The translations under genes and the position numbers were made by a program. A stretch of DNA of 63,662 bases, counting the filler, from Lenisia limosa (taxonomy: Eukaryota > Protista > Breviatea), in NCBI GenBank assembly GCA_001655205.1. It is 7 parts of 7 records of this genome, joined end to end, with 100 filler letters (N's around TTAATTAATTAA, not from the genome) between each part and the next. Parts side by side here need not be neighbours in the genome. Positions count along the whole stretch, not along the records: positions 36,869 to 47,742 come from LPNZ01008330.1; 6 more parts are not named here. One strand, given 5' to 3'. The notes below the pieces were generated by a model. It was not told the DNA's origin and did no database searches. It saw only the letters and a list, made by a program, of their open reading frames with translations. Below, piece by piece: positions 46,201 through 47,510 of this stretch (positions are counted from its first letter, which is position 1; every line of letters starts with the position of its first letter).

Positions 46201-47510
46201 TTTTCGGCCTTTTTTTTTTGGGGAGAACGCTCATATTTTGCGTTGCTCAGCCGTCAGCCGGAAGAAAATGGCAGCTATTCGGCTGCGTAAATGAGGGCAA
46301 ATGAAATCCCAGGCCCTGCGATCGGTCAAAAATCAAAACCGACATGAATTATATAAGAAGAGTGTCACGCTTAAGAGCGTTGAGATGGACTGAGAGAGTA
46401 ATTCAGAAGAAAGCCAAAGATCAATGAGTCCATAAAGGCTGAAGCTTGGGCCCATAACGTAGTTCTGTGTAGTTTATCATCATAACGAGGATGAGTTGCC
46501 TACCTCTTTTTCAGAGATCTTGCACAGTCAAACTACTTGTACAGAATACTATGAGACAACTCAGAGACAACGAGAAATTTCTTTCATTGTTTTACATTTC
46601 AGTGAAGATGAATAGAAGACTCGGTTTAAGAGAATCAAAAGTACAACACTTATAATTTGAGCGCGATAAATGGTTTAAAAAAAAGTCGAATATGACGGCG
46701 CTTCCTGTCGACCTTTGTCGTTTAAATAAAAAAACAATGTTAATATCAATTTCCAAAAAAGAACGCAATCTGGACTCTACGCTCCCTCGCCAAAAAGCAT
46801 CAACCACCTTAAATGGCAATATAATATGTTAATTTCTGGGGAAGACTATAATTGTAAGTGGTGCCGCAAGGCTTGAAAACTGAGTGTTGAAAAACCAAGT
46901 ATTGAAAAACGAAACATGGTGTCTGTTGGTGAGGAAATGGAATACTTGAATCTAAATTGAAGAACAATGACTGTACAATCGTTGTATAGTATTCCAGAGA
47001 AAGCTGAGCGGTTACAAACTTGTTAGGCCAATTAGTGTTGCTGNNNNNNNNNNNNNNNNNNNNNNNNNNTAGTTGATTAGACAATATATGAAGTATTGCG
47101 CACTTTATTAACATTGTTAACGTGTTTTCCGAAGGTAAAACCCCTTACTTGATTTGCGCTAGCTTTTGAGATTGGGGTGACCATAAGCGATTCCATTCCA
47201 AACATTATTTAACATAAAGAACCTGAGCGAGGATTGAAGCTTTTTTGCTTACAAAAGCCTGGGTCAACAACATATTTAATTCCATCGATTGTAAGAGAAG
47301 TTTCTGCAATATTTGTTGCAATCACAACCAAATTAACATAATATGACTAACTTTTCTACCACCTTCAGGAGGTGGGTCAAAAATTTTTGCCTGTTGATCA
47401 GCAGGAAGCGATGCATATATTGGAAGCACAACCAACTCTTTAATTTTGGAACCAAGTCCCTGTGTTCTTTGTTGCAGTACTTCAGCAACATGCTCAATCT
47501 CTTCTTGTCC
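40281..47510 (-). CDS. DHX16: Pre-mRNA splicing DEAH helicase DHX16/Prp2, partial (helicase C-terminal region)
   Basis: Exons 47510-47352 [53 protein letters not shown]; 47328-47223 [35 protein letters not shown]; 47198-47149 [17 protein letters not shown]; 40616-40281 RAGRGGRV-(N gap)[31 protein letters not shown]. GSKIKEL and KASANQ favour DHX16 over Prp22/16/43. Confidence 0.9.
42060..42135. repeat. Dispersed repeat family D
   Basis: ACACTCGGGAT.AACCCT.GTGT.ATCTTCGTTCAT.ATTT.GA.TTGAAAGTCGGTCATATGATCATATCAC also at 50266-50342; diverged inverted copies at about 52195-52275 and 29050-29095. Confidence 0.75.
42600..45400 (+). mobile_element. Decayed tyrosine-recombinase retrotransposon (DIRS order, Ngaro-like): gag - partial RT - RNase H - YR
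   Basis: Gag Zn motif [34 protein letters not shown] (~43215-43320); RT tail [22 protein letters not shown]; RNase H WCTDSS..IGG...[10 protein letters not shown]...[16 protein letters not shown]...YIP; [14 protein letters not shown] and [12 protein letters not shown]...GGW. Stops and frameshifts present; the RT core was not found. Confidence 0.85.

Follow-up and report, generated by a model that had tools for sequence, protein, structure and literature searches.

Two adjacent candidate ultra-short introns with GT...TG ends in the DHX16/Prp2 gene of Lenisia limosa

Few signals in the expression of eukaryotic genes are as conserved as the AG at the 3' end of introns, and the recognition of introns that are too short to hold a polypyrimidine tract is an open question (PMC13644364). 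Both matters are raised by a locus of the breviate Lenisia limosa (GenBank assembly GCA_001655205.1), in which a first-pass annotation, made from the sequence alone, proposed two consecutive tiny introns that start with GT and end with TG, in a gene for a spliceosomal helicase. Are these two pieces genuine introns of a working gene, and do they really end in TG? The window is a stretch of 63,662 nt, composed of seven parts of seven records joined by filler letters; the part that holds the locus and that we analysed, positions 36869-47742 (10.9 kb), comes from record LPNZ01008330.1, and all positions given here are counted along the whole window.

Five coding fragments of one DEAH-box helicase gene are visible on the minus strand within 36869-47742 (Table 1), and all five are open, as had been stated for the exons around the two pieces. 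In a search against solved structures, human DHX16 was the top match of both larger exons (E = 1e-15 for its residues 617-669 and 4e-14 for residues 670-703), the next paralogues, DHX8 and PRP43, scoring about 1e-12. Moreover, the closest metagenomic fragments to the product carry the JGI label DHX16. Judged by these similarities, the host gene is an orthologue of DHX16/Prp2 rather than of DHX8, DHX15 or DHX38, and the identity given in the first-pass annotation was right. The closest protein match found by the representative-library and word-indexed searches is 85% identical and belongs to an unrelated metagenome contig with another gene structure, and none of these searches yielded a protein of the organism itself; relatives obtained by a protein-based scan reach at most 74% identity, and the JGI metagenome scan gave no match to junction 1, either spliced or unspliced.

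At least three long introns accompany the two tiny ones in the visible part of the gene, with tiny TG-ended and long AG-ended introns standing side by side in one gene. Helicase motif V is encoded in the exon enclosed by the two tiny pieces. Upstream of position 40616 in the direction of transcription, TTTTTATTCTTGTAG forms the canonical 3' end of the long intron of about 6.5 kb, and C-terminal exons of DHX16 were absent from the 3.4 kb that follow the last fragment.

Table 1. Features of the DHX16/Prp2 gene visible in the window, in the order of transcription.
Feature	Position	Strand	Description
Acceptor 5' of exon 47352..47510	47512-47511	minus	Canonical AG after a pyrimidine-rich tract
DHX16 exon	47352..47510	minus	53 codons, GQEEIE...PPPEGGRK; corresponds to human DHX16 residues 617-669
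Candidate tiny intron 1	47329..47351	minus	GTTAGTCATATTATGTTAATTTG, 23 nt, GTTAGT...TTTG, GC 0.22, phase 0 after Lys codon
DHX16 exon	47223..47328	minus	106 nt; ends ...FNPRS and first base of Gly codon
Candidate tiny intron 2	47199..47222	minus	GTTCTTTATGTTAAATAATGTTTG, 24 nt, GTTCTT...TTTG, GC 0.21, phase 1 within Gly codon
DHX16 exon	47148..47198	minus	Opens with rest of Gly codon
Donor 3' of exon 47148..47198	47147	minus	GTAAGG, canonical
Long intron	40617..47147	minus	About 6.5 kb, canonical: GTAAGG ... pyrimidine tract and TAG; contains 26-N gap 47044-47069
Start of next DHX16 exon	40594..40616	minus	RAGRGGRV; enters 218-N gap 40376-40593
DHX16 exon fragment	40281..40375	minus	5' end inside gap 40376-40593; 31 residues + G
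Probable donor of exon fragment 40281..40375	40280	minus	GTTTAC

The case for the two pieces begins with the protein. Cutting out exactly 23 and 24 nt yields a product of 105 residues whose alignment to the DHX16 proteins of many organisms is free of gaps, with about 85% identity and 0 gaps over the second and third exons, and human DHX16 residues 669 and 670 abut exactly at junction 1 once the 23 nt are removed. This gap-free, colinear product bears out the claim that the conserved protein can be rebuilt only by removing 47351-47329 and 47222-47199, and the coordinates, lengths and sequences of both pieces were also found as they had been described. When piece 1 is kept, the reading frame shifts into a stop, and when piece 2 is kept, an in-frame TAA is met, again as proposed. 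In base composition, the two pieces (GC 0.21-0.22) stand apart from the exons (0.37-0.45).

In order to see which ends are compatible with this product, all cuts yielding an identical mRNA were enumerated by script for each tiny piece. For piece 1 (47351-47329), the equivalent cuts are GT..TG, TT..GG, TA..GT and AG..TT, and for piece 2 (47222-47199) they are GG..TT, GT..TG and TT..GG. None of them ends in AG, in either piece, which agrees with the earlier statement that sliding the junctions gives no AG, and only GT..TG supplies both pieces with a normal donor. Among canonical GT..AG introns, the closest option for piece 1 measures 48 nt (47351-47304), and its use shifts the frame into a stop and deletes motif V; an AG acceptor at this piece would indeed be paid for with conserved helicase residues, as had been argued.

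Inside the two pieces, a 9-mer, TTATGTTAA, is found at 47341-47333 in tiny intron 1 and at 47217-47209 in tiny intron 2. The motif is shared as first reported, and it occurs nowhere else in 36869-47742, where its two matches compare with 0.10 expected and where none of 100 shuffles reaches two. Within this 9-mer lies a branch-site-like element of the yUnAy kind, TGTTAAT/TGTTAAA, whose candidate branch A is 4-5 nt from the 3' end in intron 1 and about 13 nt from the 5' end in intron 2. No AG is present between the candidate branch site and the exon in either intron, and both donors, GTTAGT in intron 1 and GTTCTT in intron 2, offer a GT with a context compatible with U1 and U6. Among the four visible donors of the gene, three (40280, 47351 and 47222) start with GTT instead of GTA or GTG, and this unusual T at position +3 may be a trait of the lineage.

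The TG bases themselves were checked in genomic reads, and both TG ends are there. More specifically, a contig of 764 nt, assembled independently from a DNA run at a word depth of 27.9, is identical to 47070-47742 with both pieces included; the assembly may have been built from this very run, and the contig then vouches for the reads and not for another individual. This contig is the only one from the DNA placed on 47070-47742, and it shows a single form, with the pieces present at full depth and no excised variant. Since a second copy with the same exons and other introns would normally break a k-mer assembly, the unbroken contig argues for a single copy of the gene. The same contig also spans the 26-N gap at 47044-47069, reaching 77 nt past 47070, and public reads could serve to fill this gap.

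The fate of the pieces in RNA was followed by the share of sampled 31-mers that are present in one polyA-RNA run, from the same study as the DNA run. This share was 0.50 of 48 words over 47100-47560 and 0.64 of 36 words over 47148-47510. Expected shares were computed over all 31-mers of each interval, and are given here in the same order: 0.52 and 0.68 when the flanking long introns and both tiny pieces are missing; 0.65 and 0.84 when the flanks and one tiny piece are missing; 0.77 and 1.00 when the flanks are missing and the tiny pieces are kept; 0.42 and 0.54 when the flanks are missing and the longer canonical alternatives are used. The observed shares fit best the loss of both tiny pieces together with the flanking introns, and they speak against the retention of both pieces. 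Nearly all pure-exon words of the stretch are present in the polyA RNA; the two intervals differ by only about one matched word of the 12 that overlap the flanking introns, so the RNA signal comes from processed mRNA and not from contaminating DNA. Indirectly, these observations suggest that the cell removes both pieces from its RNA. The 36 sampled words do not split cleanly between removal of the tiny introns (0.68) and the longer canonical alternatives (0.54), and broken contigs at these sites could be another source of the pattern of word shares.

A further line of evidence comes from the positions of the two pieces with respect to the genes of other eukaryotes. The 105-residue product was compared with 265 aligned protein fragments that had been called on contigs, genomic or metagenomic, from other eukaryotes. 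In about 49 of them, homology is lost at site 1 exactly after RK and one Val, five more end within one residue on either side (three at 53 and two at 55), and 192 run through. A break after RK and one Val corresponds to the read-through of a phase-0 intron that starts with GTN. Site 1 is thus a widely shared intron position, common to many eukaryotic DHX16 genes and probably ancestral. Site 2, in phase 1 within the Gly codon, is matched only by six DHX8-like fragments, which break after NSKTG, and its intron may be either old or specific to the lineage.

On balance we favour, with some reserve, the explanation that 47351-47329 and 47222-47199 are genuine ultra-short U2-type introns of a single DHX16/Prp2 gene, with GT...TG ends; for both, we infer where precisely the junctions and the branch site lie and how the 3' end is chosen. 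According to the mechanism that we propose, GTTAGT and GTTCTT would be read as a normal U1/U6 donor, and UGUUAA(U/A) would pair with the branch-site-recognition sequence of U2 through Watson-Crick (A-U) and G-U pairs, leaving one A bulged. A polypyrimidine tract would have no room in 23-24 nt, and the early recognition of the 3' end would be independent of the reading of AG by U2AF. The second step, exon ligation, would then use the last base of UUUG, a G that follows a short U-run a few bases past the branch site; with no AG between branch site and exon and no polypyrimidine tract, this terminal G would be the one taken as the 3' end. In the catalytic centre, the last G of an intron forms a pair with its 5' G, and for this reason it would be kept, while position -2 would accept U in place of A. 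Ordinary acceptors, with a pyrimidine tract and AG, are found in the gene's long introns. Several points count against this explanation: both odd introns are adjacent in one gene and alike, and could represent a local peculiarity; a branch A so near the end of an intron is extreme by the standards of animal spliceosomes; and the animal introns below 30 nt that have been described end in AG (PMC13644364).

We found no report in the literature of ultra-short introns that end in TG, and known systems resemble the two pieces each in part. Among animals, only dicyemids and myxobolid myxozoans are reported to possess introns below 30 nt; these have GTa and AG ends and median lengths of 22-27 nt (PMC13644364, PMC6543705, PMC6736024). 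They have in common with the DHX16 pieces the tiny length (here 23-24 nt), the absence of room for a polypyrimidine tract and the reduced splice-site motifs, as well as A residues near the 3' end as presumed branch site and conserved intron positions. However, those introns are of the form GTa...AG and dominate their genomes, whereas the DHX16 pieces are of the form GTT...TTTG and lie beside canonical introns of kilobase size. As for the ends, GT-TG is documented as a rare and functional U2-like pair, for example in human GNAS and TSPYL2 (PMC4176328, PMC1557818). Such introns have the same terminal dinucleotides as the pieces described here, with an otherwise U2-like donor, and they show that the major spliceosome is able to ligate at TG. 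The known cases occur sporadically in introns of normal length and frequently serve as alternative 3' sites, while those in DHX16 are two in a row, constitutively required, 23-24 nt long and located in an essential gene.

Use of 3' ends other than AG at scale by the U2 spliceosome is described in Fritillaria and other larvacean tunicates, where it is linked to divergent U2AF paralogues; the main types there begin with AG and end with AC or AT, and YAY triplets mark them ahead of the 5' site and at the 3' end (PMC13326754). The likeness to our locus is in the non-AG 3' ends. In contrast, the long DHX16 introns are canonical, and the Fritillaria-type signature is absent from the tiny ones, where the cuts that start with AG have TT as their last two bases, AAA or CTC in front of them and TTT or GTT as final triplet. 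Tiny introns are also known from ciliates, those of Paramecium being about 25 nt long. For Stentor, a length of 15-16 nt is cited in PMC13644364. The ciliate introns are similar to the DHX16 pieces in their size range and in a branch A close to the 3' end, but they end in AG and belong to AT-rich genomes without kilobase introns, and nothing else at the DHX16 locus is ciliate-like.

The main rival to GT-TG introns is a young pseudogene or crippled copy, in which both acceptors are dead, transcripts suffer mis-splicing or degradation and another locus supplies the functional DHX16 message. A gap-fragmented, transposon-laden region and the absence of the downstream helicase exons from 3.4 kb speak in its favour, as does the fact that the exact RNA junctions are deduced ones. 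Nevertheless, none of the five exon fragments is interrupted by a stop, their identity to orthologues is about 85%, the RNA contains nearly every pure-exon word of exactly this sequence, and the sole DNA contig is unbroken through exons and tiny pieces; two independent A-to-T changes of acceptors in a copy with nothing else damaged would be a strange coincidence, and we hold a crippled copy to be unlikely. The proposal of a splicing feedback, which the first-pass annotation had also raised, is a refinement of the GT-TG intron explanation: weak TG acceptors would make splicing inefficient, and retention with its premature stop would couple the output of DHX16 to the activity of the spliceosome. 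Autoregulation by unproductive splicing is common among the genes for splicing factors, and retention of either piece does lead to a premature stop. Yet the data fit a genome-wide TG class equally well, and assembled contigs drop minor isoforms; a feedback of this kind is, in our judgement, quite improbable.

Removal could also take place at the level of DNA, the pieces being sequences of the ciliate IES type or transposon remnants that are excised in somatic cells. Short direct repeats, GTT and GG, do border the two pieces, whose length is near that of the shortest ciliate IES. These repeats are, however, a chance product of donor and exon consensus, no cut of either piece places TA at both ends, and the remaining introns of DHX16 are clearly of the spliceosomal kind. 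Together with the probably ancestral intron position at site 1 and the single DNA form at full depth, the missing TA boundaries speak against a transposon footprint or eliminated DNA, and we regard such an origin as very unlikely. Even less credit is due to skipping without a spliceosome, be it of the IRE1/XBP1 kind, by tRNA-endonuclease cleavage and ligation, or by ribosomal bypassing from GTT to GTT. The XBP1/HAC1 intron spliced by IRE1 is 23-26 nt long in animals and needs twin stem-loops with conserved loop motifs. The size of the pieces agrees with it, and identical GTT codons flank piece 1 on both sides, but length is the only likeness to that intron, since the twin stem-loops are missing here. 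A search of the pieces and their flanks for IRE1-type stem-loops, bulge-helix-bulge structures, CNGNNGN loops and Euglena-like end pairing found none of them; pieces and flanks fold no better than shuffled sequences (z 0.3-0.7), with the pieces unpaired, and ribosomal bypassing would leave the pieces in the mRNA, yet their words are absent from the polyA RNA. As for an error of sequencing or assembly that turned AG into TG at both sites, a gapped draft invites the suspicion, but the independent contig, at a word depth of 27.9, agrees at every base and the same error at two sites is improbable, which leaves this explanation with next to no weight.

Two other searches may be recorded here. A U12-type intron was considered and rejected, with neither /RTATCCTT nor the branch site TCCTTAAC in the two sequences, and Rfam gave no match in 36869-47742.

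If the two pieces are GT-TG introns, obligatory TG introns of 23-24 nt in a gene that the spliceosome requires would constitute a natural test case, namely of whether minimal introns have their 3' site set by how far it lies from the branch point, the last G being the sole base needed. Such genes would be broken up by gene finders that accept GT-AG alone, and genomes with tiny introns may be under-annotated. Whether the two introns belong to a genome-wide class, composed of introns of at most 25 nt whose 3' end is defined, instead of by AG, by a short U-run and a G (UUUG) that keep a fixed spacing from a branch site of the UGUUAA type, is a point on which we are doubtful, and we put the class forward as a tentative possibility. 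If such a class exists, a U2AF-independent choice of the 3' splice site would operate beside AG-ended long introns in the same genes, and the class would be missed entirely by annotation pipelines limited to GT/GC-AG. If the introns are unique to DHX16, they would be a curiosity, possibly a regulatory one.

The surroundings of the locus provided several additional observations. A degenerate mobile element of the tyrosine-recombinase type lies within the long DHX16 intron, at 41328-46250, with its coding part at about 42466-45284 on the plus strand; its ORF matches Phage_integrase (E = 4.5e-5), and imperfect inverted and direct repeats flank it. The length of this intron, about 6.5 kb, is due to inflation by the element. 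A copy with 75-79% nucleotide identity is present on the ENA metagenome contig L002 (sample ERZ3820729), on which no host gene was recognizable, and this contig may belong to the same organism or to a relative. In the runs of a second organism, from a 2023 study, a match of 45 nt to 47277-47321 with four mismatches was seen. The contigs of that organism have no bearing on the two pieces: their flanks read as a PRP16/DHX38 paralogue (...PDGLRKCVVATNIAE...IIFVIDSGYCK), with no intron at RK|V. A direct repeat of 59 nt, 90% identical between its copies, occurs past the last visible DHX16 exon (40119-40177) and in the long intron (41881-41939), and may be a short dispersed repeat. Finally, AT-rich motifs of the ATATGATAT type are present in three different DHX16 introns, at 47710-47724, at 40237-40261 and, also visibly, at 40640-40720; the 15-mer of this type has five matches at up to two mismatches, against 0.05 expected.
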